A model generated the notes under the pieces. That model had not been told where the DNA came from and ran no database searches. It worked only from the letters and a program-made list of their open reading frames with translations. Position numbers and translations under genes: made by a program. Shown here one piece after another: positions 8,367-61,283 of a stretch of 64,000 bases of DNA. Numbering within the stretch: the first letter of the stretch is position 1; every line of letters starts with the position of its first letter. This DNA comes from Penicillus capitatus (lineage: Eukaryota; Plantae; Chlorophyta): assembly GCA_965649825.1 (NCBI GenBank), contig OZ287694.1, forward strand, positions 124,001 through 188,000, read 5' to 3'.

Positions 8367-8373
8367 ACGATGT

Positions 8374-21221: not shown

Positions 21222-24200
21222 TTAATCGAAGAATCGCTCTGCAATGCTTAAGGAAAAGAATTCCCAAACGGCGTGAATGCTTCCCCAGGACTCTATACTG
21301 TCGATGCCTTCGATCTCGAGAACAATACGTGAGTATTTAGCCAGGGATTTGAAAATTCTCGAGAGTAAGAAGCAGGACAATCCACCAATTGCTAAGAAGA
21401 GTACGATAGAAAGCAGTATCTGGCTCTCATATGTGACACGACTGTCATTCAAAACAAGACCACTAATAAACGTGAGCTGCGCAACAAATAGAGAGGCGCC
21501 TTCGTAAGCGTTGAGTTGGTCAAACGCTTTATTGAAGGGACGAAGAAGAGTGTGAAGGTATAATGCAGCTGTCAAGACGCCAAGGGCAAGGACACATTGC
21601 ATGTTTGGTCCTAAAGTATAGCCATAAGCGACGATGACAGCGAGGAGCGATTTCCTGAGCATGATCATCGACTCCCAGAAGAAGAATCTGTCACCATAGG
21701 CGCGGTACAGAAACCCAGTGGCTTCGTTGTACCACACATCGCGTTCTGGAGCGTACCGTCGGACGGACACCAGGGCGAAAGCGAGGCCAACGGGGAAGCC
21801 AAGGGAGAAGAGGAGCACCACGGGCCAACCCAGTGTGCCGACCAGCACGGAATGGGCGCCTTCGTAGCACTCGACAGAGGTGTCCACTGCCCAGTAGTCC
21901 ACAGATGTTCCGACTTCGCCGCCACACGAGACGTCGGCCGTCACGCACACCAGGATGTTGACGGCTGTCTTGGTGACGGATTCGTAGGAGATGTAGGCGA
22001 CGACCAAGTAACTCAAGAGGAGTTTCTTGGCTAAGTATTGCCAGGTCTTGGCGAATTTGTAAAAGGCGATGGTCCAGAAGACGGCGAAAAAGGTGGCGAC
22101 CAGAACTGGGATGCTCATGGAGATGATCATTTTGATTACTGATCGTGGAATGCTGGCATCGGGGGGAAGCAAGCAATCGAAGGGCAGCGTCATGGTCTCC
22201 GTTGCTGCACCTCCCAGAAAATCTATGCACAGGAGAAGTTTCAGCTTGCGTGTCCCTCTTTCAGAGTGCCGCTGACCCACGGACGAGAGCAGGTGTATGA
22301 TCGACGACGTCCAGTTCACGTTAAGGGAAAGAGCGACAGCAATGACTTGGAAGAAATTGATCAAGATCTGCAGAGAACGAAACGCGACTTCTATGAATAG
22401 ACAGCGCCTGATCACCTTGAATGTTTCTGCCAGTTGTTCCTTGGCGTTTTCTGCTTTGGAAGACAGCTCTGCAGGGGATGCAACACGTTGTGATGCTGCT
22501 TGACGGTCGACTGCATCAGTGGAAGGCGATTCCCTTATCTCGGCAGTTTGGACGAATCGCGCTTCCACTCTGTTAGCTGGCTTGCTTTCAGAGGGACTGC
22601 TGCTAAGACGGATTGCCGGGATACAAGCGACGACTCTGAAAACGAGGCTAAGCTTGATGACAATCCACGACAAAAGTAGCAGCAGCAACACCGAAACCAA
22701 GTACAGCAGCGTGTTTAAGTAGCATCGGCGACATTCCACACACTCTGACGATCGAACGTGTCCGTATCCATCTTCACACGAACCACAGAGGGGACCCTTG
22801 TATCCCTAAATACGTGATGAATTCATGAGTGGTAGTTGAAATTGGCTTTGTGCCTGTCTGCACTGGGCATCGCTGTAGTTGCCCAGCAGGACTGCATCGC
22901 ATTCTCCGCAGCTGCGTATGTCCATTGCAACTTCTATCACTCTTTGTTGTCGCTCCTCAAAATCGCAGGCCTCGTGTGTGAGGCACTTCTGGATGTGCAC
23001 TGAGCAGGGATCGCTGTGCCAGTAGCCAGGAGTCGGATGGATGACTATGTCCGATGCACGGTCTTCATTCTTAGAAAACGGCTGGACTGAGCTATGTCAA
23101 TGTGAACCCAATTCTGTTGCACTGCACGGAGAACAGAGCTTCTCATTTTTGCCGTGGATTGATCAAGCAGACACTTACAGATCTCCGCTATACTGAACGT
23201 CTTGGATAGGTCGTTGTGCTTGCGGATAATCAATTACTAGTCGCCAGGCGGGTTTTTCATCGGCGAGGCCCTTCAGCTCGATAGCATTCTGCTGAAGTGT
23301 TACCTGACTGTTTCTCGAAAACGACGAGGCCGAGCATGAAGCTGTAAAAATCCAATCGTCTTCGCCATCGTAGAGGGAGAGGTTGTACGCGCCATAGCCG
23401 GCGACGTTGCTCAGAAAAAGGTAATGACCAGAGAAGGAACTGCCTAAGATTTGGAGCTTTTGAGTATTATTGTTCTTGACAAACGTGCCCTAATCGATAT
23501 CACGTCAGCTAGCTATCAAGAATGAATGTGGTCCTCTGTTTCTTGCCTGATCGTATGTGATGTTAGACTTCTTCAGCTTCACGGATTGTAGCCAAGGGAT
23601 TTTGGCTCTACGATCAAGTTGAACATATCGGACGGTGGTGTTGAACGGAACGATATCTCCCTCTTTCGCGGGACCAGCAACTGCTTGCAGATCTCTGTCG
23701 GTGCGGTCAAGAATATCTTGGTCCAATATCCACGTTCGTTTATCTGCTTGAATGATGTTACGCCTTCTGGCGGGGAAAAGTGCACATTCTCGGAATACTA
23801 GGATAGACGTCTGTCAGCATACCAGTCCATGCCGTCGTTAGTTACCGTCATCGTTGCGCTGAAGAAAGGCGCTTCTTTTGACACCGGTCTGCCAAAACGA
23901 AAGCAGTTCATTGGGATAACGACGCTGTACGACATCAACCTTCGTTCCGGCAGGTGTGTCGTGTGGGTGGAGTTGCCCGATATTGTCTGGAAGACAGACG
24001 GCAGTACCTGAAACGGAGAAGATGGTCGACAACGTTTGGCCAAAAGCGCGGCAGTTGTTTAGCTAATAAACATCTCAAGAATGAAAAAGCACGTGGACAG
24101 CGCACAAGACCATGTTTCGTTTGCGCCTCACCCTGCAAAGACATTGCAGACGTGTGACTGGACGAGGCACGAGTCCTCAGTGTGCCGAAGAGGCACAGAC

Positions 24201-24246
24201 AGAGCAAGACGAGTAACGGCGAGAAATGGAGTGTTCGAGGGACCAT
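21222..24246 (-). pseudogene. Receptor paralogue A: ectodomain deleted or decayed, multi-TM module intact
   Basis: Signal peptide and beta-helix cap match paralogue D. The beta-helix and Ig region are missing, and the Cys-rich part at 23040-23230 is frameshifted. The 505-codon TM ORF 21222-22739 is uninterrupted. Confidence 0.8.
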
Positions 24247-25575: not shown

Positions 25576-28500
25576 ATGCGACGATCTCTCTGTCTTCTGA
25601 AACTTTGCCTTCTGTGCGCTGCGCTCTCACGAGGCGTTGCCATACCACTCGCAGCTGAAAGGGCGACCCCGCGTCCGCCAGACGCCGGGTCGACGAACGA
25701 CGGTTTTATTCACGACTTCTTCACAGCTTTCCGACTGTGCTGTCTGGCGTTTAGACCGAATGGTTGAAAAACAGCCACCTGCGTCGACGACAACGACCTT
25801 AGACCTTTCGACGGAACTCACTCAGAACGTACTGTTCGAATCCGTTTGAAATCAAGCGCACTGAACACGACCTCTTTTGCTTCTAGCAGCTGAACGTGAC
25901 GCGAAGTCTGCTTCAGTCTGACGCGTGGCAACATGACGACGCATCAGGTCAGTGCAGCTTTGTCGACGCACAGAGCGCAGATGTCGACTGGTTTCTGCCG
26001 TGCTGCAGGATTCAACTGTGAGTTGACAGACATGGCTGTAGGCAGATATACTTCAGCAGATAAGAAAACATGGCTCGTCGACGACGAAGTCCTCAAAGAG
26101 ATCGACAACGACCTGCAGATGATCATCAACTGCACTCAAGAGGGAGATGTCGTTTCTTTTAATGCGACTGATGTCATCAAGCCGTCTTCCCTCGTCACCA
26201 TCCCATGGCAATTGACGATCTCTTCGTACACCAAAGACAACTCTGGAAGACACGACTACCGGCGCTCCAAGACGAGGACAATTTTCAAATGTCCTCAAGA
26301 AAACACTGGACTCTTTCTTGTGCAGTAAGATCGCACGGAAAAAGACGTTTATCTCACTCACTTTTCGGATGCAGGGCCACAGACGTCACCTTCGCTGATC
26401 TTGTCATTAAAGGCTGTACATTCGACGGCACAGAGGGAGCACGGGCACTCATTGAAGTCTCGGGTTGCGAGGCAAAGAACGGCGCACGACTCGTGGCTCT
26501 GCACCGCGTGACTTTTCGCAAGAACACACTGATTTCTGCTTCGGGGCTTCGGATGTCCGAGTCGTCGTGTTCCGACTTGGAGATGGTCGAGGTCGAGATC
26601 GCGAACAACGTCTGTTCGAGCGACGGCTGCGGTGTCCTCCTCTCAAAAAAGAGCAATCTGGAGAACTGCGCCGCTTTCGAAAACAGAGTGGTCAAATCCA
26701 ACAAGCAGATGTCGTCCTTGTTGTATGTTCCGGCGTTGTCCAGTACCACGATCCAAGGACTGGAGGCTTCCAGAAACGACCTCACTGTCATTCGAGTTCG
26801 AGAAGGAGACCTTTCTTTGTCGAACGCGTCGTTCGTTCGGAATACTGTGGACAATGAAAATGCCGAAGAGACGAAGACCACCTGTATTCATTTGGTCCAG
26901 TCGTCTGCCGCAATCAGCAAATGCAGTTTCACTGCCAACAACGGCTACAACGGGTCGGCTGTCCTCGCAAAAGAGTCGGACGTTTCTGTCTCCACTTCGG
27001 TTTTCAACAACAACCTTGGTTCTCGGAGTGGCGGCTGTGTTCACGCATTGATGTCGAACGTGACACTTGAGAAAACCTCTGCGACCAATAACAGTGCAGA
27101 AAGGGATGGCGGATTTATGCACGTGTTGAGCTCGAACGTCACACTGGAGAACACGTCTGCTGCTAACAACATCGCAAAGGATGATGGCGGATTCTTGTAT
27201 GCGAAAGACTCGACCATCGCGCTGGAGAACACTACCGCGACTAACAGCAGCACGGAATCTGTTGGAGGATTCTTGTATGCACAGGAATCAACTGCGAAGC
27301 TTGAAAACACCTTGGCGACCAACAGCAGCGCGGAGAACTCTGGAGGATTCTTGTATGCGAAAGACTCGACCATCGCGCTGGAGAAGACTACCGCGACTGA
27401 CAGCAGCGTGAAGGTAGATGGAGGATTCATGGTCGCGTGGAGATCGAACGTCACGCTGAAAAACACTTCGGCGGTCAACAGCAACGCTAAGGATTATGGC
27501 GGATTCTTGTATGCACGGGAATCAACTGCGAAGCTTGAAAACACCTTGGCGATCTACAGCAGCGCGGGGAACTCTGGAGGATTCTTGTATGCGAAAGACT
27601 CGACCATCGCGCTGGAGAAGACTACCGCGACTAACAGCAGCGTGAAGGTAGATGGAGGATTCATGGTCGCGTGGAGATCGAACGTCACGCTGAAAAACAT
27701 TTCGTCGGTCAACAGCAGTGCGGCGAATGATGGAGGATTTGTGTACGCGCTGATCTCAACCGTTACGTTAGAAAACGCTTCGGCGACCAACAGCAGCGCG
27801 GGGAACTCTGGAGGATTCTTGTATGCGAAAGACTCGACCATCGCGCTGGAGAACACTACCGCGACTAACAGCAGCACGGAATCTCTTGGAGGATTCATGT
27901 ATGCACGGGAATCAACTGCGAAGCTTGAAAACACCTTGGCGACCAACAGCAGCGCGGGGAACTCTGGAGGATTCTTGTATGCGGCGGGCTCGAACATCAC
28001 GCTGGAGAACACTACCGCAACTAACAGCAGCGTGAAGGCAGATGGAGGATTCATGGTCGCGTGGAGATCGAACGTCACGCTGAAAAACATTTCGTCGGTC
28101 AACAGCAGTGCGGCGAATGATGGAGGATTTGTGTACGCGCTGATCTCAAACGTTACGTTAGAAAACGCTTCGGCGACCAGCAGTAGATCAGAGGATGATG
28201 GAGGATTCGTGTGTGCGGAGGACTCGAATATCACGATGGCAAACATTAATGCGGTCAACAGCAACGCTAAGGATTATGGCGGATTCTTGTATGCACGGGA
28301 ATCAACTGCGAAGCTTGAAAACACCTTGGCGACCAACAGCAGCTCGGAGAACTCTGGAGGATTCTTGTATGCAGAGGACTCAAAGTTGACAGTGCATAAC
28401 ACAACCGCGATCAGCAACAACGCGGAACACGCTGGCGGCTCTTTGTATTTGCTAAATTCGAACTTGAGAATCACACTGTCACAGTTCTCCTCGAGCAACT

Positions 28501-31500
28501 CCAATACCTCTGGAGGCTTTGCCGCAATGGACAGCAGCTCGATCTTCATGAATGACACTGAGATTGTTGGAGGAAGATCCAAGAATGGTGGAGCAATCTG
28601 GTTGAAAGCGTCCAACACGACGGCACGCAATCTCTCCATAATTCACTGTCGAGCTGACAACTCCGGCGGCGGTGTTATGAGCCGCGCACACTCAACTTTT
28701 CTGTGTACTGACTGTAAGTTTGAAAGCAATTCTGCAGAGAAGGGGAATGGCGGTGCAATTTTCTTCGATTCCCACCCTAACCAGACTCTGGCGTTGCAGA
28801 TCGCTCAAAGCCGCTTCGAGAACAACGAAGCAGATTTCGGGGGTAAGACTTGCAAGAAAAATGGAGCGCTGTTGATACACGTGCGTTTAGGCGGACTCTT
28901 CTTTGTTTGCAGCAAGAAGAACGACCGATGCTCGACAAACGGCACTGATTGTCCCTTCATGGCTTTGACGGGCACAAAGCTCTCTGGCAATAACGCGAAA
29001 GTCGCAGGAGGAGCCGTCTTCGTTGGTTACTTAGAAGCTGTCCGTTTCGATTGCTCCGTCCCTTCCTGGGACTCCCGTTTGAAATTCTACGAGGAGGAGA
29101 AGTGGAAAGATCTGAAGAGAATGGAATCGATCGATGACTTTTGCTCAGGGTGGAAGAACAACAGCGGCAGTGTCTATGGACCCGTCATCGGGACATATGC
29201 CGTAGCTGCACGAATGACACTCGAAGATACCAGCTCCGTATGTGTTAGCGGGAGTGAGGACTGTGTGCTTGCGGAATATCGCAACGGCACAGACTTGCCC
29301 GCGGCAACAGTAACGTTGGTGGACGGTTTTATGCAAGGTCCTTCGAGAAACTACCGCGCAGTCCAAGCAACCTTGTCGTCGCCAAGTAACGAATTCTTGG
29401 TCGGGTCTGTCGTCTTGCCAATGAAAGACGGAACTTGTACTTTTCGATCCATCAGAGGCTTTGTTCCTCAAGGAGAGTACAAGTTGACAGTCGACTTTAG
29501 CGAAACGGCTATCCAAGAGATTGGGCTCACTGTTAAAGTCCAAAACTGCTCTTTCGGTGAAGTTCTGTTGCTTGCGAAGTTTTGTGTCGACTGCAGCAGT
29601 ACAAGCTTCAATTTCGACCCATCAGCAGAAGAGTGCCAGCCTTGTCCAGAGCATGGCAACTGCGAGTCCAGGGCGATCACACCGGAAGACGGATACTGGC
29701 AGAAGACGCCGTGTTCGGACCACATCTACAAATGCCTGCCAGCATCAGCCTGCAAATTCAAAGGACGTTCCAAAAAGCTGACAGACCTCGTGAGCAATGT
29801 CACGAGCTGTCATTTCAACGAGACGTGGATAGAGGAAGATTACACGAAAACCCAGTGCGCGAAGGTACATCTTTGCTTTCTTTCGCGTATTCGAATCATC
29901 TGCGTGTTCGTCGAAGGGCCACGAAGGGCCACGTTGCGGATCATGCTCACGCAGATATGGTTCTGGTCTGTCGGCGAAGTGCCGGAAGTGCTCGAAGGGA
30001 TTTGTCAACATTGCTCTCATTCTAACATCAGTTCTTTTCTTGATGGGACTGACAGGTATCACAGTCAATGGTACACTTAACGTTAGGGAGACGAACCCCG
30101 GAGAGCTTCGTCGCCAAAATGCGCTGACGACACGATCGACCGAGCTGGGGCCCGTTACTTCTCTCGAAGATCAAGCAGAGAGAGCGAATACCAATAGGCC
30201 TTCGCATCGCCGCGATTCTCTGGGCGATCAATCAATCGAAGGCGTCCCTGCAGATGATGTGCTGCTCGCGAAGTGGAAAGCCGTCGAAATGTTCAAGGTG
30301 AGAAAAGCAAGTGCCTGGCCTTCTCTCGCTCATTCGCTTGTGTCGCTGTCGTAGATCATTCTGGGCTTCATCCAAACGACCATCTTGTTGGCTTCTTTGG
30401 ACGTCGGATGGGGCCTTCCGCTGTTTATCTTGGCAGAAGCGGCAGGTAAGGCCGAGCATTGATTTGCGTTGTGTCAACGATTCGTTGCTGTGGCAGAGTA
30501 CATCAGTGGCCTCGCGTCTGATGGCAACAGACGCTCCGTGATGTGTCTGGATCTTAAAGATCCGTACGTGCATCCCACGGCGCTGGCTTTTGCGTTCAAC
30601 GTCTTCTTCGTTCCCGTCGCCGTCTTTGTCTTCTGGATGGCGTTCTGGATGATAATGGCTGTGAGATACGGAAACGACAGGCCCCCTCGTTGCCTGGCGA
30701 AAAGATGCATGCTATCCCTGATGGCTTTGTGGTACATCACACTGGTGCCAGTGCTCAAAACCACCCTGAGCATCGGACTCTGTGTCGACGTGGAAGACTC
30801 GTCGAACGCCTATGCAGGCGACCTCACCACCAAGTACTGGGCCCTCGACACGAGCATCCAGTGCTATCAGGGAGACCACGCCAATCTTCTCTACTTCACG
30901 GTTGGGGCGTTCGTGTGTCCAATGTACGGCGGATTGCTGATTGTTTTTGCTCTTTTCCTCAGAGCTTCGGAGAAGCATCTTTGCGACAAGGACGGCTGGA
31001 TTTACGGGACGACAGGATTCCTCTACCGCAGTTACAGTCTGGGTCGCCGTCGTTACTGGGAAGTCGCTGTCGTTCTCAGAAAGGTGGCAGTTTCCTTTTT
31101 GGTGTTCTGCGCCCACCTTTACGACAGCGTCGTCCCCATCACTGGCGTCGCGCACGTCATCACACTTGCCATCGCCGCACAGATTGTTGTGAAGCCCTAT
31201 CGCAAGGAATTCAAAGACCTGAACAGATTCGAAGTAGCTTCTCTAATCATTTCGCAAGCGACGACGCACGTGGCGATCATGCTCAGACAAGAAGACTTCC
31301 CGAAAGACATCGTCCGCGAGTTGTTTACAGTGGCATGCGTCTTGCTGAGTCTCATCACCTTTTTCGTTTTCGTATTCTACCTTCTTAAGTTCGCAGCTGA
31401 TTACCTGAGACACGGTTTGATAGAACGCGGCGAAGACACCGTGTCAAATGCTGGAATGTTCGGTGTCCTGAGGCAATGGATCGGCTACGAGATCAAGCGT

Positions 31501-31578
31501 CTGATTCCCAATCTGAGATCAACGCCCAAAGATCCCGAGACCGCCGAACAATTGGCCTTCGAGGGCAGAACCGAATGA
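25576..31578 (+). CDS. Receptor paralogue B: signal peptide, Pmp-like beta-helix with 26-aa tandem repeats, Ig-like, Cys-rich, about 8-9 TM; intact
   Basis: All exons join in frame through GT-AG introns. Motifs: GGF/GGA repeats, NGTDLP...DGFMQGP, CQPCPEHGNC...GYWQKTPCS, GHEGPRCGSC, YWALDTSIQCY, GFLYRSY...YWEVAVVLRK. Confidence 0.88.
27030..28511 (+). repeat. In-frame tandem array of 19 x 78-bp (26-aa) units in gene B
   Basis: GG codons recur at an exact 78-nt period (27030, 27108, 27186, 27264 ... 28434, 28512). Units 3-18 fall into a few near-identical sequence types. Confidence 0.95.
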
Positions 31579-31611
31579 GCTCTATTCGCCAGAGATTCTT
31601 TTCTTCTTTCC

Positions 31612-31707
31612 GAGCTGAACCCGAATAAGGTTCATATCACATAAGCTACCGTCTTATTTTTCATCTTTCCAAGCTGAGCCCCAAGAGGGACTCAAATCAC
31701 ATAAGCT
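31612..31707. repeat. Two copies of a hairpin motif (AGCTGAGCCC-loop-GGGCTCA-WATCACATAAGCT) 3' of gene B
   Basis: TGAACC-cgaataa-GGTTCA and TGAGCCCC-aaga-GGGACTCA, about 59 bp apart. Homologous pair at 39523-39625. Confidence 0.75.
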
Positions 31708-33029: not shown

Positions 33030-36000
33030 ATGAAGCGGCTTCCTTTGTTGTGGCTGTTACTCGCCAACGTCCTTATCCTGTCCTGCGTGTTCTGTCGGCG
33101 CACAAGTATGATGCCGAGCTTTCCTCTGGATGTGATGCTTTCATCCAGGTGTTTGCGACACTTATGTCGACAGCAATGCGGTGACCGTGAATGACCAGAC
33201 CGTGGAAGACATCGAAGCTTCTCGCACATCGTTTCAAGACATCGTGGACTGTTTAAACCGGAGCGGCGTCATTCGCTTCGCGACGGAAAGATTCTCAGTC
33301 GACAAGACGATCAGAATCGACAAGGATGTCTCTATCACATCCACCGCACAAAGAAAGACATCCTTCATATGCAACGGACAGCCTGTTTTCGACATCAAGT
33401 CGGTATTTCCTCACCTCCACAAGTCTAGCTGAGCGTCAACTGTGTAGAGGAGCGGCGGTTGACATCTCAGACATCATGATAAGAGAGTGCGCATTAAACA
33501 GCGCAGGGGCGGTGCCAATCGTCATCGGTTCAGGATCAAATGTCATTCTCAGATCCGCAAAGTTCTCTCGCAATGTAAACGATGCGGGACCCAGTGTCGT
33601 CAAGGCTCTGAACGCATCTAGCATCGCCATCGAGGACAGCAAGTTTCGAAGTAATCGTGGACACCTAGGGACAGTTGCCCTAACGAATACCAGCATCCTT
33701 GTTGTTTCCGGCTCGAGTTTTTCGAAGAACGCCGCCACCAATCCAGAAAAGGCGGCGGCGTCTTCCTCATTCAGGTAGGTCCATCTTCTGTCAACCAGAC
33801 TCCATTGCACCCACACAGTGTGGATGTAGAGCGAGGAAACACAGACCGCCGTTGTCGTCAGGAACGCAAGCGCATTCATCCAAAACGAGGCTGTTGCAGG
33901 AGACGGCGGCGCTTTCCACGTTTCTGGACAGGGCGTCTCTCTCGTCATCGAAGATGACGTTCATTTCAAAGAGAATGTGGCAAAGAGAAGAGGCGGCGCC
34001 GTCTTCGTATCGAATGCATATAGCCTGACAGTCAGGGATGCCTTTTTCAATGAGAACAAATCGAATCACACCGGCGGCGGGGCCATCTTTGCAGAGGTAA
34101 ACTTCTTTATCTGCGATCCAGGAGGTTTCGTTTTGATCATAGGATGTGCGAAAGAATGGAGGTCTACGCATCGAGGTGTCTAATATCTTGTTCGCTCAGA
34201 ATGAAGCGCGTGGCTTCCTTGGTTCCGGCGGCGGGATGCGTATTCAAGGGCGTGGTGTCAGCGCTGCGATATACGATTCCGTTTCGTTCGCACTCAATAA
34301 AGCACATCTCGATGGTGGAGGCATGCATATCTCAAACGAGGCATTTGCCTACATCCTTAACGCTTCGTTTGTTGGAAATGAAGCACTTAACGGCGGTGGT
34401 GCTGCCTTGTATATCTTGGTAAGACCATCGTGGGAAGCGTATCGTTGTTCCCATGCCAATTGTGTTACAGTCGCTGGTACGAGATCCGGAGATAACAATG
34501 GAGGTCATGGTCTCCAGCACGGACTTTTTATTCAACAGCGGACTCTATAGCGATCGAGGAGGCGGATGCATCGGCGCCTTCGGCATTGGATTAAATGTGA
34601 CGGTTAATGAGTGCTTCTTCAGTGGCAATGACGGCGGGCGGGGAAGCGGAGGAGCAATCTATGTCTCTGGCGGACCAGTCGTCAGAATCAGGGGAACGGT
34701 ATTTGAGAGAAACAAAGCGGAATGGGGAGGTGCTTTGTATGCCGAGGTGGGCAACGGAACGTCCACAGTCGATGGATTTGCATGTGTTCTAGAGCGATGT
34801 TCTCTACGTCATACATTCGTCCAAGTCCATCGAGAATTCGGCAAGAGAAGGAGGTGCCATGCACGTCCGGGGCGACGTGGACGTCGTCATGGACAACTGC
34901 ATATTTGAAAGCAACAGAGCCATAACAGAAGGAGGCGCCATCAAAGTGCTCAGCTTCACCTCAGCTGGAGACGAACGTGCGCAATTCCGAATGACGAATA
35001 GCACCGTGGTGGACAACAAAGCTGGCACCAACTTGTTCGAAGACAGACTTTACGGGACGGAGACGCACGGTGGAGGAATCTTGGCAGAAGGTACTGGAAT
35101 CGAGATGGAACTGTTGGGCAACACCTTCAGCCGCAATGTGGCCTCGAATGGCGGCGCCATGAGAATCTATGTCGTTGTTGATTGCGACATTGGCGACGGT
35201 AACAGGTAAGCATGGACTGAGACGATGACAGATGCTGAGAGATGTCAAAGGTTCGAAGACAACGAAGCAAACTTCGGCGCCGCCATTTTCTTGGTCGTTG
35301 ATGAAAAAGTCGACATTAACAGGCGGGATGCGTATCGCATTGCTGGCGCGGTTTTCCGAAACAACAGCGTCGAGTTCACAGGAGGGGGTATCTACGTCTC
35401 AGGTACACGGACAGAATCGCTCTCGGTATCGTTGAATGCACGCAGCTTCCTTTTGCTTGTCGAGGGCAGTTTATTCACAAATAACACGTAAGCCATTCAT
35501 GTATGTTACTGCAACCGTTTGAACACAGATCATGACAGGGCAAGGCGCGGTGGCGGTGCATTGTCGATGATCAGTTCGGCTGTCAAAGTCTATGGATGTA
35601 TCTTCGTTTCGAACACGGCAGTGGCGAATTCAACAAGCCAGGCAACTCCGTTTCTTGGCTACGGTGGAGCCATAAACGTTCAGACGGGTTCCTTAATGAA
35701 GTGCAACTCCTCGCTGTTTCTGTCGAACCGAGCAGATGTCGGCGGGGCAGCGTTCGTACGCGATGGCACCTTCGAAGCAGAGGGCGTGAACTTTACCAGG
35801 AACTCCGTTCAACCCAGAGGCGTTGGCGGCGCCGTGGGCGTAGAGATCTCCAAAGGAAAAGACATACCATTCATCAACAGCGCCTATCGACTACGCAGCA
35901 TCGTCTTTCAATGTGAATTCTGCAACTTTGAAAAGAACAACGGTTCCCTCGCCGGAGGTCAGCTCACTTACGCTTGCATCGATGTTTGCTGATGACTGTT

Positions 36001-49400: not shown

Positions 49401-50063
49401 CGGCCGGACGACGGGAAGCATCTCTCGAAGGCGACATTCTCGAACACGACGCCGCCCGATCTGCACAGCGCCACCGGAGGTCCGTCAGGTGGTTCGGCGA
49501 AAGAGAGCTAGCTGACCGCACGAAGAGGGCGCCGTCGTCGGTCGGGCATGTGAAGGTGGTGCGTTCGTTCGCGTCGCCGAATGTGAGCGGCCAGGAGATG
49601 GCGACGGGACGGATGGGACGGACGGTGGTCACGGTGCGGAAGCGTACGACGTCACCCGGGGCGGTGCAGTTGACGACGCTTTGCAGGTCGCCGTCGACGC
49701 GGTCGAGAAAATCGCGGCTCAGGATCCACGTGCGGCCATCCTCTTGCAAAATCTCCCGTCGCTGGGACGCAGAGAGCCCGCACTCGGCGAATCCTGGAAA
49801 AATCTGCCTCAGAGACCGACCGACCGATCCGCCTTCCCTTACCGTCGTCGCCTCGCTGAAGAAGACGGCGTCCTTCGGCATCGGTCTGGAAAAACGCAGT
49901 CCATCGCGCCGAGGAGAACGTACGGCGAGACCTTTGGGTCGACGGTTATGCCATGTCGGTGAAGTCGCGTGCGGTCGGGACTGGCGTGGATCCGGAACAG
50001 GCCAAGGAGACAGAGACAGAGCAGCGCACGTGGCGGCGCGGACTTGAGCGCTCGGGAGACCAT
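44585..50063 (-). CDS. Receptor paralogue D: beta-helix, Ig-like, Cys-rich, multi-TM; intact
   Basis: Signal peptide, GRRLLQ, cap WILSRDFLDRVDGDLQSVVNC, GGA/FxxN repeats, SGDALP...DAFGQGP, GYKGPLCGSC, YWAVDTSVECY, GFLYRAY...FWES. The model needs one GC-AG intron at 46152-46203. Confidence 0.88.
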
Positions 50064-50472: not shown

Positions 50473-53400
50473 CTAAACGATCGTGCTCTGAGCGTTCGAC
50501 GATCTTTTCTGCTGATCGTTTTGATCGGCAAGGATAGCCAAGAGATGATTCGCGTGGAATGCCGCGTAGCGAAAGAGAATGTGCGTGCGCCCACGGGCGT
50601 CGAGATCTTCCACGCCGGCCGCTTTGAGAACGATACGAGCGTAGGCCGCAAAGGTCGTGGCCCATTCGCGGAGAAAGATACACAGCAGGCCGCAGATCGT
50701 GGCAAACAGGATGAAGCCAAGGGCCCAACGGCCGCCGTTTGAGAGGCCTTCATCGTTCAGAAGCAGACCGCAGGCAAAAATGAACTGACCGATCATCAAC
50801 GAAGCGCCCTCGAGTGCATTCAGCCGATCGAACTCGGATCTGAAGGGACGGAAGTAGAAGTGCAGAAAGAGGGCCGCCGTCAGGATGCAGACGGCCAGTA
50901 TCCCCTGAACGTTTCCGCCGAGGGAATAGGCGAAGCTTGCGACGATGACGAGGAGAGCCTTTCGCAGCGCCACGAGGGATTCCCAGAAAACGAGCTCCTG
51001 GCGATAGGCACCGTACAGGAATCCACTGGCTTCGCGCATCCAGCTGTTCGATTCACGATCCTCCGGTTTGGTGTGGATCAGAGCGAGTGCCATGGTCATT
51101 GGAAAACCCATGGAGAAAAGAGTGACCAGTGGCCACCCAAGAGTCCCAGCTACGGTTGCGTGGGATCCTTCATAGCATTCTATGGACGTATCTACGGACC
51201 AATAGATCGAATCATCTTGCAAAATAGAGGAGGGATCCGTCGAGTCTGTACAGGATCCCTGGACACGAATGCACGACAGAATACCAACTGCCGTTTTGGT
51301 TGTGGATTGGTAGGAGACGTAGGAGACGACCAGGAAGCTGAGGAGAAGTCGCTTGGTGAAGTAGCTCCACGTCTCTGCCAGGTTGAGCGTGGCGCACGCC
51401 CAGAAAACAATGAAGAAGGAAGAGATGATCAGAGGGATAGCGATGAGCAGCGCTGTCCGGAGGATGGAACGGGCAACGCCCACATCTGCCGGCAGCAAAC
51501 AGTCGATGGAAAAACCGACGCTGCTCAGCGCGGCACCTCCCATGAAATCTGCAGAGACGGAGGGGGTCGGTCGGATGGCGGTTGCATCGTGGCTTACCGG
51601 AGACGCCAAAGAGCGTGAGCAATGCGGACGTCCAGTCTACGTTGATCGAAAAGGCGACGGCAACGACTTGCAAAAAGTTCAGCGTCATCTGCCAGCGCAG
51701 ACCGGATGCAGGTGCATCGAAAGGGCCACAGAGATCACGTACTTTAAATACCTCGATCAGGTGTTGGTTGAGGGCTTGAGTATTACATTCTGGGTCAGGT
51801 GCTGGGTCGTGGACATCGTTATTGGGGGCGCCGTCAAGAGACGGGCACTCCAGATCCTCCCTAAAGCGCAGAACCTCCTCCGGTCTGTTTCCGTGCCTTC
51901 CGGCGCGTGCCTGTCCGTTTGAGCGTCGCCGGAGGTCCGTCCGATAGCGAGGCGTTGAGAGCGGTGCACGCCGATGGGCTTGGCGATGGCGATACCGCCT
52001 CGTATGGCAACGCTCGAGAGAAGGAGAAGCAGCAGGACGGAGAGCAGGCACAGCAGGACGTTGCCATAGCGACTGTCGCATTCGGCACACTCCACGGACG
52101 GAGAGCGCCCGTAGTCGTCGGAACAGGATCCACACAGAGGGCCTTCGTATCCCTAACAGCCACGTCACATCAAATCCGGATGCCAGAAATCGAGGAGGCA
52201 CGCACCTCCTTGCACAGGGCGGCGCTGTAGTCGTCGATGAGGTCCTGATTGGCGCACTCGCAGGACATCACATCATCAGTCACCTCCGCCAGACGCTGTT
52301 TGCGATCGGCGTAGGTGCAGGCTTCTTCGGTCAGGCACTGGTGGATGCTTTCCGAACAGGGATGGCTGTGCCAGTAACCGTCGACGGGATGCAGAACATT
52401 CCCCTGCGAGCAGTCGCCGTGTTCAGGACACGACTGGCATGGCTGTTCGGGATTGAAGTTGCACTGCGTTGCGGTGCACGGCTGACAGTACGTCCCGTCC
52501 ATCGTCGTCATTTCGCCCAGCGAGCAGGGACGCACGTGGACGTTCAGTATGCGATCAAAGTCGTCGCTGTCGCTGAACCTGAGGAGCACTTCGTAGTATG
52601 CAGGCATCTGCAGCACCGCAATGCCATCGATGCTCGCCGAGCCATCCGTCACCGGAACGTGGAGCGTGCCGTTCATGAAGCCGTTGGCGGAGGAGATAAT
52701 GAGTTGGGGGTCGTCCTTGACGCCGAAGACTGGGCCCTGTTCAAACTCGTCGATCACTTCGACGGCCATTTTTGGCAACGGATCGCCGCTTCGGTGTCCC
52801 TCCAGATACCAGTAGCGCTCATGCCAGACCTCCAGCTCGCCGGTCGTGCTGTTCTCGATGTAGTACCTATTGGTCGTGTGGGCCGAGGCGATGAAGGGAC
52901 CGAAAGTGAGGGCGTCGTTGCCACGCCAGTTGCTGCACACGTCTTCGGCGGAGGAGATGACACGGGTGACCGGTTCCGCATTCGAGGAGGCGTTGGACTG
53001 GCGTTCTTCGCAGCTGAAGCGCACGCCGCGTTCGGAGGCTTTGTAGATCGCGCCGCCGGCCGTCTGGGCGTAGTTGTTCACAAACCGCGTGGCTTCCAAA
53101 TCGATCAGCGCGCAGTTCTCTGCGGAGTCGAAGCACTGGCCTCCAGGTACGGTGTCTTCGTAGCGGATGGCGCCTAGAGACAGAAAGCGTCGTGTGATGT
53201 GACGTCTGGCGTTGCGCACCTCCTTCGCTGCTGGTGTTGTTCTGGAAGAGGCAGCGGCTGAACTTGTAGGGTATCCTCGACGACGTCGGCGCGGCCAGAG
53301 ACATCGCTCCGGCACCTCGATTGGCTCTGTTGTCTTCAAACTGACACTCCGTGCAGCGGATGGTCGAGTTGACGGCCACAACGGCGCCGCCATACTTCAG

Positions 53401-56065
53401 AGCCATGCACTCCTGCATGCGAAGACCTTCGGCGATCAGATCGGATTCCATGAGGAGAATGCCGCCGCTGCCGTCGCCCCTGAGTGCTGACCCGGAGACG
53501 ACGCTCGTGTTACCGATGCTCAGATGCGTCTTGGCGCGGACGTCGAACGACGCGCCGTTCGTCTCCGTCGCATCCCCTCGGAACTCCGATCCGTTCACGG
53601 ACAGGTCACTCCCTCTGGCAGCCACCGAGGCGCCGCCAGCGACGGCCGTGTTGTCGGCGAAGCGACTGGAGAGGACGGTGGCGCTCGACACTTTGACCCA
53701 AAGCGCCCCTCCCCTGGTCGCATTGTTCTCCAAGAACGTCGTGTCGCGAACTGTCGCCGTCGCCTGTTGCGTCAGAGCAATGCCTCCGCCTGATCTTGTC
53801 GCTTCATTCTCGACCACGGTCGATCCGTTGATCTCCAGATGGCAGCTGTCAGTGGCGAAGATCCCACCACCGGATCGTCTCGCTGTGCTGCGACTGAATG
53901 TCACATCACGGCCGACCACGATCGCCTTTCCGCCGCAAGAGATGCCACCGCCTGAAGCGCCGGCGCGCGTGCGGATGAAACGGACGCTGTGTATGGACAG
54001 AGAGGCGTCGCGAAGGAAGAGGCCACCTCCGGAGCCGGCACTGCGGCACTCTTCCACGCGCGAGTCTCGCATGTCGACGCTGGCGTCTTGCGATGCGTAC
54101 ACGGCTGACCCGTGCCGACCGGAATTGGCCAGAAACGCACTGCCGGCCGCCTCCATACGCGAATGATTCGTGACGAGGATTCCAGCGCCGTCCTCCTCGC
54201 AGCTGCCGCGCTCCAACGTCGTGTTCTGCAGCGCCACTGATGCCTCTGACAGGTACACGGCTCCGCCTGACGTCGCCACGTTTTCGTCGAAGCCGACGAA
54301 GTAGAGCAGCGCTTGGCAAGGGGCGACGGACTGCTCGGTGTTGTCCTGGAGTGGAGACGCGTTAGACGCGGGCGGTGAGATGGAGGCGCAGGACGGAAGG
54401 GCGTCTTCAAAAGCGTCGACCGTGTGCTCCAGCATTCTGCACTGCAGGCAGCGCTCTTCGGCGTTCTGCACCATCACGGCGCCGCCACTCACTGCTCGGT
54501 TTCTCGAAAACGTCGTTTCTTCGATGCGGAAGGCGCTGCCGTTGGTTATGCTGAGTGCGCCGCCTGCGCTCGCCGCGCTGTTGCCTTCGAATCGGCACCG
54601 GATCAGTTCCACGTTACTGTGATCCAGAGCCATTGCTCCGCCAACCGTCGCGTTGTTCTCGGCAAAGTAGCTGTCTTCAATTCGGAGCGACGCGGTCGAC
54701 GTCGACCGCAGAACGGAGCCGGACTGCCCGATGGCACGGTTGCGCTGGAAGGTGCTGTTGGCGATGGTCACATCAACGGCCTTCTCCAGCACGATGACGG
54801 AACGCCCGTGATTCTCCGAGAACGTCGACAGACTGAGCTTCAGAACGGCTTCGTCCGCGTGCACTGCCGTACCGTCGTTGTCGCGGACCTGCATCTCGAC
54901 GGCCGTCGTCTCCGAGGCAGGCGGCAGCGACAGCAAGGCAAAGCCTGATGTGGCGGATTCGGTGTCCCCTTCCGCCGATATCTCTGCATTCCGTGTCACG
55001 GTCAAGCGTTGCAGCGTATTGTGCAGAGAGAGACGGGCGAAGCAGACACCCGAGCAGTTGTTGGCCACGAAGGCGACGTCGGTCATCTCAACCGAGGCGC
55101 AGGACGGCTGTGTGACCACCAAGGCGGCGGCGCCATTCAACTGATTCTGGCGAAAAGTGACGTGACGTAGACGGACGGCATCGACGAGGTCATTCGATGC
55201 ACATGGCTCGATTTCGATGATACCAGCCTGCTGCTCGGCATCGGGCTGGCAGTCCACGAAGGTGATGTTTTCGAAGACGACGACGCCTGCAGATCTGCAA
55301 AGGTCACATCGCTGCCGTTACATCCAAAGAGACGTCAGTCGATCGCACCGTAGGAGAAATGCCCCTTCGTTCGGGGGACATCGAAAACGCGTTCGGCCGG
55401 TATGACCGTCGTCCATGAAGGTGCCCAGTGTGACGCCTCGCTGGATTTGGATTCTGTGGATGAGCTGAACGGGACGATCGAGCCGGAACCGCACGCTGTC
55501 GCCCTGCTGGATGCAGTCCATCACCCTCTGCACATCGCCGTCGACGCTGTCCAGCGCCGCCTGATCCACCAGCCACATACGCTGTGGCGCGTTTAGGATG
55601 TCCTCCACGAGATCCGGAGACAGAAGACAGGCACCATCTGCCGCACATCTCATAAACGCATGTCGCGTGAGATGACGACCTACCGCGGAAGTCGGTCTGC
55701 AATACGCTTCGGGACGTCAGAGAGGCCTGGCGAGATGCAAAGGGCGGAGAAAACAAAGGGCCGAAATCCGCCGAAGCTTGAGCAGGTGCCAACCATCTTG
55801 CATTTTCTTTCGACGGGCCTATTGCGCAGTCGGATGATGAGCTCCGTGGGTCGCAAGGGGGGTCGGGCAGACGTGAGGGATAGAGTAAGGGCGTCGATGT
55901 CGTCGTCCGAGTGTCCGAGGCCGAACGCGGCGTAACACGTGCCGCGTCAAGTCGCGTCGTCGTCGCCTGAACGTCGACGACCTCTGCGCGGTGTTGCGCC
56001 AAACAGGCCGAGACGAGACAGCAGAAGACGATGACTCCTGCACAGGAGAGACCAGTTTCAGGCAT
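50473..56065 (-). CDS. Receptor paralogue E; intact if a private 59-nt intron (51911-51969) is spliced
   Basis: Same architecture and shared intron positions: RSVLQ, cap WLVDQAALDSVDGDVQRVMDC, SGDPLP...DEFEQGP, GYEGPLCGSC, GFLYGAY...FWES. Confidence 0.85.
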
Positions 56066-56298: not shown

Positions 56299-59200
56299 TC
56301 AGGGGCGTGACTGAGGAGTGGTGCGCGATTGCGTATGAGGTCCCGTTGGAAAGAGGAGGGCGCTGCATTGAGCACAGCCTTCTTTAAGACGCATGATGGC
56401 GTATTCGAAAAGCAGTTGCAGCGAGCCCCACGATTCCGGAACATCGACACCGGCCGATTGGAGACTGGCACGGGAGTAGCGACCTGCGGTGATCATCATT
56501 TTGAAAAAGAAAAAGAGTGAGAGGCCAACGATGACGGAGGTCAGGAAAAGAGTGAGAAGGATACGGAGAACATGTCCAATGCGGCCGTGATGGAAAAGCA
56601 GGCCCGCGGCAAAGGTCAGCTGACAGACGACCAACGCGGCCGTCTCGTCGTTGTTCAGCGGGTCAAAGTCCGAACGGAAGGGGCGGAAGACGGTGTGCAG
56701 GTAGAGGGACAGGGTCAAGACGCAAACGGCGAGGATGGATTGGACGTTGCTGTCGAGGACGAATCCGGCAGCGACGATGACGGCGAGGAGGGATTTCCGA
56801 ATCATGACGAGGGACTCCCAGAACACCAGCTCCTCCTTGTATGCCCGGTAGAGGAATCCAGTGGCGTCGGAGAGCCAGATGTCGCCGGAGGGCGTCCTGC
56901 TCGTCAAGAAGAGGGCTAGGATGGCCGGGAAGCCTAAGGAGAAGAGGAGCAGGACGGGAATGCCGAGCGTGCCAACGAGCACCGCGTGGGCGCCTTCGTA
57001 GCAGCGCACGGATGTGTCCATCATCCAGTAACGGACCGTGGACTCGGCGTCGGCACAGGCTTCGTGCACTTCGACGCAGAACAAGGTGTTGGCCGCTGTC
57101 TTGGTGATGGCGACGTAGGCGATGTAGACAATGAGGAGATGGCTGAGCAGCAGACGCTTGGCGAAGTAGCGGCACGTTTCGGATGACTTGCACGTGGCGA
57201 TGATCCAGAAGACGGCGAAGAATGCCGCGACCATTGCCGGGATCGCCATGAGGAAGACGGTCCGCATGATGGAACGCGGCACGCTGGAGCTAGACGAGAG
57301 AAAACAGTCGATGGGCAGCGTGGCCCCCGCCGTCGCCGCCGATCCGAAGAAATCTACGAACAGGGAGGAACACATTCAGAGGGCCGGCGTCGAAGGCGGT
57401 CGGAGATGTCTGGCCTTACCGGCGGCGGAGAAGAGAGTGATCATCCATCGAGTCCAGTCGACGTTGATGGACACCGCGACGGCGATCACCTGGAGAAAAT
57501 TGACGGCGATCTGGACAGACACCGTCGCTGAATGCGTGGAGGCGGACGTCTCGATGCGGACCTTGAAGATCTCGACCATGCGTTGTTTGTGGAGCCGGGC
57601 CTGCGATCCAGCTCTTCTGCGGTCGCCGGCGTCGCTCGGTCCTGCTGCCCTTTCTCCGACCGGACGGCGCGTCAGCTGCACGTACCTGGTGGGAGGCTGT
57701 TCCTCGAGCTGGGACCTCGACATGCGACGACGGGATACGAAGGAAACGGCGTTCTCTGTCAGAGGAGAGGACGTCAGGTTGCTCCGAACGGCAAAGCTCG
57801 TGAGAAGCAGCAGCAGGAGGATGGACAAGACGTAGAGCACTATGCTGATGTGTGTGCCGTGGCATTCCGAGCACTCCAGCGATCGGGTGCGCCCGTACGT
57901 CGCATCACACGACCCGCAGAGCGCGTCCTTGTATCCCTGCAGTCAAGCAAGTCTCTCCGCATCCATACGTCACATCACTTGCCTCTCTGCACTGGGCGGC
58001 GCGGTACTGTGCCAGAAACGTCACGTCAAGTGCGCAGGAGTCGAGTCCCTGTGTGATCTCCGCCAGCTGCCCCTTGCGCTCCTCGAAATCGCAGGCTTCG
58101 CTGACGGGACATTCCTCGATGGTCTGCGAGCACGGGCAGCTGTGCCAGTAGCCAGGCCTCGGATGGATCGCCGTCTTGCTCGAGCAGTCTCCGCGATCCG
58201 GACACCGTCGGCACTTTCCTCTGGGGTCAAAACTGAACTGCGTTTCGCTGCAGATGGAGCAGAACGTCCCATCAGCCTCACTCGATTCCCCGAACGAACA
58301 GTCGCGAACGGCGACGACCATCTTGAGCGCAGGTATCGTCTCTTCGCTGAAGTCGATGCTGATGTTGTGCTGTCCGTGGTGGTGAAACCCAATCACGTCG
58401 TCGATGGTCGCCTCTCCCCCGTGCAGCGCCACACGAATGCTCCCGGCGAAGAACCGATCGTCCGATGACATGACGGCCGTGACGGTGGTCTCGTTGGCGC
58501 CCACCGCCGGTCCTTGGCCGAACCCATCCACAACAGTCAGTCGGATTCCGGGCAGAGCTTCGCCGCTGCGGTGATCTTCGACGTTAAGGCGTGTGCCGTT
58601 CCAGGGTTGGAAGGTGTCGGAACGGTTGTACCGCACGAAGGGACGTACGTCTCTGGCGTACGACGCGGCAAAGCTGCCGAAGGTCTCGGCGCTGTTGTCG
58701 TACCACTCGGGACAGGACGTTTGAAGGTTATCCAGTGTTCGCAGTCCGGATGCGGCCGCCTCTGCCCCCGAGCGGCTCTTCGGCACTCTCCCAGCGCAGC
58801 GGTATTTGACGGCCCTGGGGTGACTGACGAAGAAGGCGCCGCCGACGGCGGCGGCGTTCCGCGCAACTCGACTGCCGAAGAGAAACAAGCGCGTGCCGTC
58901 GGTGCCGGACGGCCGACCGTCGTCGTCCTCTCGATGCAGACGCACGAAGTAGAGCGCACCTCCTTGACGTCTCGCTCGGTTCTTCGTGAATCGGCTGTCG
59001 GTGAAGTTGTACGACAACCTGAGTGGATGCGTAGCATTGAGGGACACGCCGCCGCCCAGCAATCCAGCCGTGTTGCCTCCGAATGCGCAGGCAGAGCACG
59101 AGATGGCCGAGGCAAATCCGCCGTGCAATCCTCCGCCGCTCTCCGTCGCGTTGCACCTGGAGACGCGCAAGCTCTCTGCTGCCAGATAGGAGTGCGAGAG

Positions 59201-61283
59201 GTAGAGTCCGGCGCCGATCTTCGAACGGGAAGAGGTGATGGAGACGTCGGTCAAGGAGAGTCGACATCTCCAGAGGGCACTGATCGACCCCCCGGCGGTC
59301 TCGGCCGCGTCCTTCTCGAAATCGCTGGACGTGACGTTCGCGAAGGACAGTCGCAAAGCGAGGGATCCTCCCCCGACGGCGCGGTTCTTCGTAAACTGAC
59401 TCGAGAGCACCGTCAGTGTTGCCTTCTCGGCGAAGGCGGCGCCGCCGCGGAAACTGGCACGGTTGCCTCGGAGAGTAGCGTGGCGGAGGGTGGCCGTCGA
59501 TCCGGATCGCACAGAAACGCCGCCGCCCGACTCCTGGCTCCTGTTGTCGACGATGCTCGCGTTTGCGGCCAGCACTTGGCAGAGATCCTCGGCAGAGATG
59601 GCTCCCCCGTCGGTTCCGGCTTCGTTGTGCCGCAGCGTGACGTGGCGCGTCAAAGTGACGTTTGACGCGCGGCATCGAATACCACCTCCCCTTTCAGAAA
59701 CGGCTCGATTCCGCACGATGCTCGAGTGCTCCAGAAGGATCGTGGAGTTGTTCTCGGCGCTGAGGGCGCCGCCGCCGGCTCGCGCGCTGTTGTTTCTGAA
59801 GACGCCGTGATGAACACCGACGAAACTCCGCGAAGCAGAAAGAGCCCCTCCGCGGATCGCCGCATTTCCTTCGAAGCTGCAATCGGTAAGTGACAGTAGC
59901 CTTGTGTGGTTTGCATAGATCGCCCCTTCGCTTTGATCAAGTGCTCCGTTGCCGGAGAACTGGCAGTGGAACATGGAAGCGTGTATCGATGCCGTCAACA
60001 CGATGACCGATCCCGGTACGTTGTTCGAGAACTGGCCGTTTATCAGCGTCAAGCTGCCGGCGGTCACACGCAGCACCGGCATCTCATTTCGCACGGCGAC
60101 CATACCAGAGGCGTCGGTGATCGACGCCGCGGGCACTGCGATCAGAGCGCCACGGGCTTCGCTGCCAGAGGGGAGTGCAGTGTTGTTCTGCATCGTCACA
60201 TTTGTCAGACGATTCTCCAGAGAGAGATCCGCAAAGCAGGTGCCAGAGCACGCGTTGCCGACGAAGGACACATTCGACATCTCGACGGCGGTGCACGCGT
60301 CGCTGCCGACGCGCACGGCCGATGTTCCGTTCAGAACGTTGTCGCGGAAGACCACGCGTTCGAGGACAACGCGACCGGATCCACTCCCGCCGTCGCATTT
60401 CTCGACGTCGATGATGGCGGCGTCTCCGTTGGTCCCGTTCAGATAGCATTCAGTGAAAACGATGCTCCCAAACGACGCTCCTCCAGATCTACAGAGACAC
60501 GTACGTGCATAGGACATCCGTTCGGACGGGAGGGCCGTCGCACCTCAGCAGAAAGGCTCCTCTGTCCTTTCGACAGCGGAAGACCGTGAGCTCCGTCGCA
60601 GCCGAAGCGGCGTCGCTGGCTTGATCGACCGGCGCTCCCAAGACGAGCCTCCAGGGGATTTCCACACGTCTGGAGAGCTTGATGGGGCGCTTCACTCGGA
60701 AGAGGACCGTGTCGTCTTCGCGGGTGCAGTCGATGATCATCTGCAGATCGCCATCCAGCGTCCTGAGCGCGGCGTCGCTCACCCGCCAGGTGCGTTGCTC
60801 CTCATCCAGCAGTTCAGAAATCTGCGCTGGCGAGAGCGCGCATTGGTCGTCGGTGTCTGATGGAATCGCCGTCTGCGAGACGGCCCTCGTCGACGCACCG
60901 TCTGTCTCATCTTGGAGCAGGGCACGATGTCGTGGTACGGCGTCGCTCAGAAAGGCTCGCTGCGGGACGGTCGCGTGTCGGACGTGGACCGTCGGCACGG
61001 CGGAGAATCCCGACTCGGGCGACGATACGTTGCCGCTCGCAGAGGTAAGCGTCGCATCGTAACCTGCAGCGTTCGCTGTCAGAGAGAACGCGCGTTCCGG
61101 ACTGCTGCCGGGCGTCGCGCTCCGTCGGCGACGTGCATCGCAGACGCAGACGGCGAACGAACCGGGTGTGTTACCTGTGGGGCTCAGGAGACGGACGTGG
61201 GCGTCGGCGCGTCCTCGTGAATGAAGGATGACCAGAATCCAGAGGAGCCAGGGGAATCGGTGAGCGAAGGGTATCGGTGTCAT
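56299..61283 (-). CDS. Receptor paralogue F; intact
   Basis: Signal peptide, RALLQ, cap WRVSDAALRTLDGDLQMIIDC, an 870-codon beta-helix/Ig/Cys ORF, a GC-AG intron at 57937-57982, and a TM module with GFLYRAY...FWES. Confidence 0.88.

Follow-up and report, generated by a model that had tools for sequence, protein, structure and literature searches.

A shuffled gene cluster of Penicillus capitatus joins PMP-type beta-helix ectodomains to a putative PF06011-type membrane module

The DNA analysed here, referred to as the window, is a stretch of 64,000 nucleotides (nt) from the green alga Penicillus capitatus (NCBI GenBank assembly GCA_965649825.1, contig OZ287694.1, positions 124,001 to 188,000 of the forward strand), with a G+C content of 50-62%. 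Between 21.2 and 61.3 kb of the window lie six paralogous genes, A to F, all of which were recovered by tblastn with the spliced model of gene F (E values from 1e-24 to 0), and the six-member cluster outlined in an earlier reading of the letters alone (hereafter the original prediction) is thereby confirmed. D, E, and F (44.6-61.3 kb) and A (21.2-24.2 kb) are on the minus strand, and B and C (25.6-39.5 kb) are on the plus strand; complete copies encode 1,588-1,806 amino acids (aa). Each complete protein couples a large, predicted beta-helix ectodomain to a C-terminal membrane module that appears to be a diverged relative of the fungal PF06011 proteins. This architecture is a new one for what appears to be an already known family of membrane proteins, and the locus records the shuffling of domains unusually clearly.

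The encoded proteins follow one order, comprising a signal peptide, an R-x-L-L-Q motif, an N-cap, the beta-helix, an all-beta region, a cysteine-rich (Cys-rich) region, a linker, and nine hydrophobic helices, and the ectodomain takes up 1,100-1,300 aa. Signal-peptide-like starts are found in all six genes, as had been expected. Behind the signal peptide, B, D, E, and F have a variable stretch, the motif R-x-(L/V)-L-Q, and acidic residues, in that order, and A has a degenerate version; an intron lies a few codons after the motif in B, D, and E. The motif was not found in C, so that its distribution is the one originally described. R-x-L-L is also retained, amid sequence that cannot be aligned, in a family member from another contig (L001). 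The site-1 protease (S1P) consensus is R/K-x-x-L (PMC3252376). The motif behind the signal peptide is probably an S1P-type site that removes the variable propeptide in the secretory pathway. A PEXEL/TEXEL-type export signal was considered for R-x-L-L-Q and dropped, as the host is a green alga and the S1P consensus fits better.

The N-cap has the pattern 'C...W.[LV].D...D.DLQ..[IV].C...GAFLL' and ends in '...GAFLL(R/V)' at an intron that occupies the same position in the models of B, C, D, E, and F, in line with the conserved intron originally noted. With regard to the repeats that follow, the suggested GGA(I/L/V)/FxxN units of PMP type are well supported, since the beta-helix of D matches Pfam Beta_helix (E = 2.2e-29) and Chlam_PMP (E = 1.4e-22) and F matches Chlam_PMP (3.6e-5). 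Beta_helix, Chlam_PMP, and NosD are the only Pfam families detected in the D ectodomain. These profile matches show a predicted large right-handed beta-helix of PMP-type coils in the cluster proteins. In B, the helix contains a recent tandem array whose unit corresponds to one coil, with higher-order repeats of 234 and 390 nt (82-90% identity).

The region after the beta-helix carries the conserved motif 'SGD.LP...D.F.QGP'. It had been labelled immunoglobulin-like, a label that lacks support from Pfam or modelling: D residues 913-1234 (exon 47174-46204) have no Pfam match, and AlphaFold gives only 7-8 beta strands at low confidence (predicted local distance difference test, pLDDT, 43). The Cys-rich stretch reads 'C..C......P....C..CP..G.C....I.P..GYW...PCS', and a conserved intron separates it from the linker. 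The GCC2/GCC3-like repeats proposed for this stretch were not borne out, as the best PF07699 match, in D only, reached E = 0.72 (10.1 bits). The EGF-like linker, G(Y/H)xGxLCGxC, gives a weak but repeated match to DUF7630.

The membrane module makes up the C-terminal third of the protein. By hydropathy, it contains about nine hydrophobic segments, at the upper end of the eight to nine originally counted: transmembrane segment 1 (TM1), a low-complexity loop, TM2, and seven more in the last exon. TM2 begins at a conserved intron that falls after 'FK' and ahead of '..NFLQV'. The motifs YWxxDTxxxCY and GFLYxxY..WE, which had been singled out earlier, lie in the last exon and correspond to invariant columns of the module alignment (W109, D112, T113, and C117 for the former; G165-F-L-Y168, W178, and E179 for the latter); C16 is invariant as well. 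From hydropathy, the N-terminus would be outside, the C-terminus cytosolic, and the loops with conserved Cys extracellular. A signal peptide in all copies together with nine segments matches the predicted layout of PF06011-type proteins, with an extracellular N-terminal domain and a cytosolic tail. An AlphaFold model of the module, made from a shallow alignment, shows seven helices in the last exon (pLDDT 62). The suggested comparison with G protein-coupled receptor folds gave nothing of substance, the best Foldseek match being to such a receptor at E = 0.56 and a TM-score of 0.23 on this low-confidence model, and no Ion_trans, PKD_channel, or 7TM match was found in the window copies with Pfam.

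The suggested comparison with TRP/Flc-like proteins proved more productive. An exhaustive profile search with the last-exon alignment showed the module family to be very large, with 7,832 representative clusters reaching E<=1e-3 and 218 of them E<=1e-30; word-indexed searches with the module alone or with a broadened alignment yielded no more than 9 and 13 metagenome proteins, respectively, all without names. Among the 30 top matches checked, all 27 that carry a species name belong to the Bryopsidales (the siphonous green algae Caulerpa lentillifera, Bryopsis sp. KO-2023, and Ostreobium quekettii), and these named relatives measure 1,100-3,400 aa and likewise end in the module. PMP-like repeats are present in 48 of the 48 long matches, and the linker motif in 43. 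Two relatives found in the profile search at E = 1e-46 to 1e-57 exceed the PF06011 gathering score of 28.5 bits, namely P0134 (49.8 bits) and P0100 (32.8 bits); in the broadened alignment A2, 8 of 16 modules match TRP (PF06011), with a best E of 5.9e-15, and two Ostreobium members are named 'TRP C-terminal domain-containing protein' in UniRef. Because relatives found by the module profile pass the gathering score, the window modules are taken to be diverged members of the PF06011 superfamily by transitive homology.

The ectodomain and the membrane module have evolved very differently, as had been stated at the outset. Between the B and C proteins, identity is 81% over TM2-9 and 80% over linker, TM1, and loop, falls to 53% in the Cys-rich part, and is only 18-24% over N-cap, helix, and all-beta region. 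At the DNA level, B and C are 85% identical over the module and about 200 nt of 3′ flank and 73.5% identical in the Cys-rich part, with nothing detectable between their ectodomains. Over the membrane module, the DNA of A is 83% identical to that of D. Divergence is more even among the D, E, and F proteins (module 48-54%, helix 32-36%). The non-synonymous to synonymous rate ratio (dN/dS) of the membrane modules is 0.23-0.39. The 5′ end of the C ectodomain (33002-33716) has a counterpart of 81% DNA identity in a gene from a different contig and another sample (L001 19248-19961), and because of this similarity C-type ectodomains appear to form a subfamily of their own elsewhere in the genome.

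A near-identical ENA contig, ctg340286 (pieces L002 and L003; 19x coverage), allows the locus to be compared between two genomes. It is 99% identical to the window over positions 1-10028, and the D and E exons compared are 100% identical, except for the last exon of D (99.3%). At the position of B and C, the ENA contig has a single gene, and 7.9 kb including the C ectodomain are absent. The first 900 bp compared of this gene are identical to B; the coil array is 86-95% identical with a 78-column gap, the length of one unit; the all-beta and Cys-rich part is 92-94%, the linker 97-98%, and the last membrane exon about 91% identical. Across 29589-31782, three-way comparison gives 305 B-like sites, 79 C-like sites, and 58 unique sites matching neither gene. 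C-like sites are concentrated at 30390-30640 and 31089-31290 and unique ones at 30640-30940. Such B-like, C-like, and unique tracts are the expected signature of gene conversion among membrane modules. A simple unequal-crossover hybrid, with a B 5′ part and a C 3′ part, is ruled out by the alternation of the tracts. Between B and the ENA allele, the ectodomain has a ratio of non-synonymous to synonymous polymorphism (pN/pS) of 0.97, with 51 non-synonymous and 16 synonymous differences. The membrane open reading frame (ORF) of C is not on record in the contig index, and no second assembly carrying C was found there.

These comparisons show that the ectodomain diversifies through coil duplication, insertions and deletions, and near-neutral or diversifying substitution, and that the modules are kept similar by purifying selection and by gene conversion between neighbours, with whole units gained or lost. 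The birth, death, and shuffling that the original prediction had proposed can be followed in the decayed gene A, in gene C, which is present in one of two near-identical assemblies and absent from the other, and in the patchwork allele of B. In the ENA contig, a seventh member (P0004; L003 6209-11158), 88-92% identical to D in DNA and with ectodomain ORFs that look intact, ends about 25 nt into the window (positions 1-25); with this gene counted, the cluster reaches beyond the window, and about 20 kb of unrelated genes lie within it.

To build the exon models (Table 1), reading-frame segments were joined at GT-AG or GC-AG sites where this preserved the frame and brought back similarity to the paralogues. 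With 35 of 36 modelled examples measuring 36-66 nt, the introns, which have GT-AG or GC-AG ends, are very short. The intron ahead of the GYxGxLCGxC linker has a GC donor in F (GCAAGT, 57983/57982) and in D (GCACGA, 46204/46203), and GT in B, C, and E. Gene A is truly decayed. At its N-terminal end there remain a signal peptide (from 24246), the motif in the degenerate form RSAFLQ, and part of the N-cap (about 23975-23592), but its beta-helix and all-beta part (equivalent to D residues 127-1122; about 1,000 codons) are deleted, and its Cys-rich part has an in-frame stop and has lost the CxxC cysteines. Its linker and nine-helix module remain an open frame (22805-21225), and the last exon has a dN/dS of 0.23 against D.

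Of the calls made earlier on the state of each copy, those of F and D as intact and of A as decayed stand, whereas the supposed disruption of C resolves into short introns. The ectodomain of C is intron-rich, with about 10 introns compared with 2-3 in that of B, and GT-AG introns of 36-57 nt account for all the frame changes in its beta-helix. The reading of C as a frameshifted pseudogene was rejected, as normal short introns bridge all frame changes and 1741 aa read through; C is not clearly a pseudogene. The one irregular feature of C is an insert of 632 nt that interrupts the TM1 codons and exceeds every other intron of the cluster tenfold in length. The insert starts with GT and ends with AG, and its splicing would restore the frame with one additional Val; it could be a young intron derived from an inserted element or a fresh disruption. 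A multi-copy mobile element was considered, and no second copy was found in the window. The call of B and E as intact holds in part. Both have open spliced frames, of 1806 and 1747 aa, but the signal-peptide exon of B, from 25576, is modelled without a join to the exons that follow it, and E has a tentative 47-nt intron (51848-51802) with a weak donor in the TM1-TM2 loop, for which the alternative is a frameshift.

Table 1. Coordinates of the cluster genes and their elements, numbered from the first letter of the window
Feature	Position	Strand	Basis or remarks
Gene A, decayed copy	21222..24246	-	tblastn, paralogue comparison
Gene B	25576..31578	+	6 exons plus unjoined signal-peptide exon; 1806 aa without the signal-peptide exon
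B exons	25887-25947, 26009-26324, 26375-29864, 29917-30297, 30355-30445, 30497-31578; signal-peptide exon from 25576	+	
78-nt tandem array in B beta-helix	27184..28372	+	unit 26 aa = one coil, 15.2 copies
Gene C	33030..39486	+	14 exons, 1741 aa, no stop
Insert in C TM1 codons	37330..37961, 632 nt	+	absent from B and the ENA allele; inverted ends TGTGAAGAA / TTCTTTCACA
Gene D	44585..50063	-	8 exons, 1707 aa, apparently intact
D exons	50063-49932, 49885-49843, 49793-49517, 49460-47224, 47174-46204, 46151-45780, 45730-45640, 45585-44585	-	
Gene E	50473..56065	-	8 exons, 1747 aa
Gene F	56299..61283	-	5 exons, 1588 aa, intact; second intron GC donor
F exons	61283-60544, 60488-57983, 57936-57562, 57510-57420, 57353-56299	-	
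R-x-L-L-Q motif	F RALLQ 60912..60926; E RSVLQ 55697-55711; D RRLLQ 49856-49870	-	
R-x-L-L-Q motif	B RSLLQ 25902-25916	+	
Post-N-cap conserved intron	F 60489-60543; E 55295-55348; D 49461-49516	-	exon models
Post-N-cap conserved intron	B 26325-26374; C 33399-33447	+	exon models
Last exon, TM3-TM9	F 56299..57353; E 50473-51548; D 44585-45585; A 21225-22220	-	
Last exon, TM3-TM9	B 30497-31578; C 38414-39486	+	

With regard to function, it is tentatively proposed, with confidence just short of even, that these proteins are cell-surface sensors in which a wall- or ligand-binding ectodomain gates a Pkd2-like, calcium-permeable module and from which a propeptide is removed. The ectodomain would bind a wall polysaccharide or another extracellular ligand, and strain or binding would be passed to a stretch-activated, calcium-permeable module resembling Pkd2, so that the proteins could act as integrity, wound, or contact sensors; S1P-type cleavage at R-x-L-L would remove the variable propeptide in the secretory pathway. 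The fungal precedents are that reconstituted Pkd2 of Schizosaccharomyces pombe passes calcium upon membrane stretch (PMC9727806) and that pkd2, trp1322, and TrpR belong to PF06011 (PMC8618638). Several points weigh against the sensor proposal. The window modules give no PF06011 match in Pfam even at E<=1, their membership is only transitive, through relatives, and the matches of those relatives span only profile positions of about 203-405. Foldseek comparison of the module model (pLDDT 62) with the PDB returned nothing below E = 0.5, and a PDB sequence search with the module found nothing. Right-handed beta-helices are often enzymes rather than binders, and the S1P site is a four-residue motif. 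Furthermore, PF06011 proteins are not uniformly channels, the Flc proteins being described as flavin carriers or calcium-homeostasis factors and several members residing in the endoplasmic reticulum (ER) or Golgi.

The main mechanistic rival is an enzymatic or structural beta-helix joined to a non-channel module. The proteins would then be secretory-pathway or wall carbohydrate-active enzymes (lyase-, epimerase-, or glycosidase-like) or wall tethers, with an Flc-like module serving as a carrier or homeostasis factor. The Beta_helix and NosD matches are in keeping with this, the fold being common to many polysaccharide-modifying enzymes; plant wall enzymes, too, make use of an R-x-L-L propeptide site, and the fungal PF06011 family includes Golgi and ER residents and flavin-carrier annotations. 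However, no catalytic-family Pfam match was found in the copies, the repeats strongly match the adhesin-type Chlam_PMP family (E = 1.4e-22), and high ectodomain divergence with changes in coil number would be unusual for a fixed active site. An enzyme or anchor is considered unlikely. A further explanation, that of the original prediction, concerns what would be sensed: the genes may encode polymorphic receptors that recognise microbes or tell self from non-self, as in the compatibility of cytoplasm or gametes of a coenocytic alga, with the hypervariable beta-helix providing specificity and the module acting as the transducer. This reading is compatible with a sensor and does not exclude it. 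Ectodomains far more divergent than membrane modules, the recent 78-nt coil array of B with its 78-column gap between alleles, a pN/pS of about 1 in the B ectodomain between otherwise near-identical genomes, the presence of C in one assembly only together with mosaic alleles, and Caulerpa gene numbers that suggest tandem clusters there too are all what recognition would lead one to expect. Nevertheless, the comparison covers two haplotypes only; in these, D and E are 100% identical even in their ectodomains, unlike a generally hypervariable locus, and a pN/pS near 1 fits relaxed constraint in a repeat array equally well. The function of the proteins as a whole is inferred, and a part in self/non-self or microbe recognition would be pure inference; as a distinct explanation, recognition is considered somewhat improbable.

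A stronger form that joins the two ideas, a polymorphic locus in which allele-specific beta-helices directly gate a Pkd2-like channel and contact with non-self cytoplasm, gametes, or microbes is turned into a calcium signal, is regarded as a long shot. If it were true, the cluster would represent a receptor-channel class without a characterised counterpart, made diverse by coil duplication, gene conversion, and the gain and loss of whole units. The shuffling itself might also be an assembly artefact, with the B and C haplotypes wrongly placed in tandem or the ENA contig a chimera of the two. Both assemblies appear to be unannotated, with ORF-style gene calls only, the coverage of the ENA contig is low, and its gene is intermediate between B and C in the membrane module. 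On the other hand, B-C similarity stops about 200 nt past the stop codons and the upstream regions are unrelated, unlike a haplotig duplication; the 58 ENA sites that differ from both B and C lie in one tract; and the ENA allele is 6-8% off B in the all-beta and Cys-rich region, where C is about 73% identical to B, unlike a collapsed consensus. In addition, the mosaics of A with D and of B with C can be seen in the window alone, independently of the ENA comparison. An artefact is judged very improbable.

Among known systems, the fungal PF06011 proteins (Pkd2, Trp1322, and Trp663 of S. pombe; Flc1-3 of Saccharomyces cerevisiae; TrpR of Aspergillus nidulans) have what is taken to be a homologous membrane module. 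The cluster proteins likewise have a predicted extracellular N-terminal domain, a cytosolic C-terminus, and multiple helices, nine here by hydropathy. Calcium homeostasis, wall integrity, and the response to membrane stretch have been reported as roles of the fungal proteins (PMC9727806, PMC8618638). In most fungal homologues of TrpR, the ectodomain is small, ML-like (TRP_N), and lipid-binding (PMC8618638), whereas the ectodomain here comprises 1,100-1,300 aa with a PMP beta-helix, an all-beta region, and a Cys-rich stalk; no ML-like/TRP_N domain was detected in it by Pfam, which reported only Beta_helix, Chlam_PMP, and NosD. Unlike the fungal members, the window copies are too diverged to match the Pfam model themselves, and they belong to large, tandem, fast-rearranging families, compared with 3-4 copies in S. 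pombe and A. nidulans (PMC8618638).

The Pmp proteins of Chlamydia and the Pmp-like proteins of Trichomonas also have a GGA(I/L/V)/FxxN beta-helix and form polymorphic multigene families, the Pmps being adhesins. In contrast to chlamydial Pmps, the cluster proteins have no autotransporter beta-barrel (no autotransporter Pfam match) and end in the nine-helix module; the membrane anchor of the trichomonad proteins is single-pass and differs from this module. Unlike either group, the present genes are green-algal and contain spliceosomal introns. Animal polycystin-1 (PKD1) and PKD-REJ proteins combine a giant modular adhesive ectodomain with a multi-helix, TRP-related module and have been proposed to be mechano- or ligand sensors that control calcium entry. 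The parallel is a functional analogy only, as the module here comes from another family (PF06011), and Pfam detected no PKD_channel, PLAT, GPS/GAIN, or PKD-repeat domains in the cluster proteins; an origin independent of PKD1/PKD-REJ receptors is likely. The closest known proteins are entries of Ostreobium quekettii, Bryopsis sp. KO-2023, and Caulerpa lentillifera, which have the same architecture and belong to the same family (module E = 1e-117 to 1e-46) under automatic names such as 'TRP C-terminal domain-containing', 'Adhesin-like', 'Right handed beta helix domain-containing', and 'hypothetical'. Neither a PMP and PF06011 fusion nor the cluster family was found in the literature searched, which included the Halimeda, Bryopsis, and Ostreobium genome papers.

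Several other genes accompany the cluster. An unrelated U-box (PUB-like) E3 ligase gene lies between C and D (40987-42972), and housekeeping genes are represented by an arginyl-tRNA synthetase fragment (1603-2595) and THO complex subunit 2 (3809-7636); the order of these three is the same in the ENA contig. The arginyl-tRNA synthetase fragment is 98% identical to an ENA metagenome-assembly contig; identity is 62% with a volvocine alga and 61% with Ostreobium quekettii, and land plants come next. This pattern places the source among the green algae, and the nearest relatives of the cluster family suggest Bryopsidales or an allied group, probably a siphonous ulvophyte. Two paralogous single-exon ORFs on the minus strand, 10525-12099 (524 aa) and 17790-19295 (501 aa), have similar N-terminal regions and weak leucine-rich-repeat matches and constitute a second locally duplicated family beside the receptor cluster. 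A plus-strand ORF of 405 aa (13644-14861) contains repeated 'DCF/DCI...G.D..L' units with no Pfam match, whose form suggests a beta-propeller or a lectin-like protein.

Siphonous green algae are single giant cells that survive wounding through fast responses triggered at the cell surface, and to our knowledge the sensors of these responses are unknown. An adhesin-like ectodomain joined to a module that appears related to a fungal protein passing calcium upon stretch is a concrete candidate for such a sensor, and RNA interference exists for Bryopsis, which makes the candidate testable. In addition, the locus offers a clean, small-scale example of how a constant putative transducer may be kept while the sensing domains are swapped and remodelled, with two near-identical genomes differing by a whole gene and by what appear to be conversion tracts.

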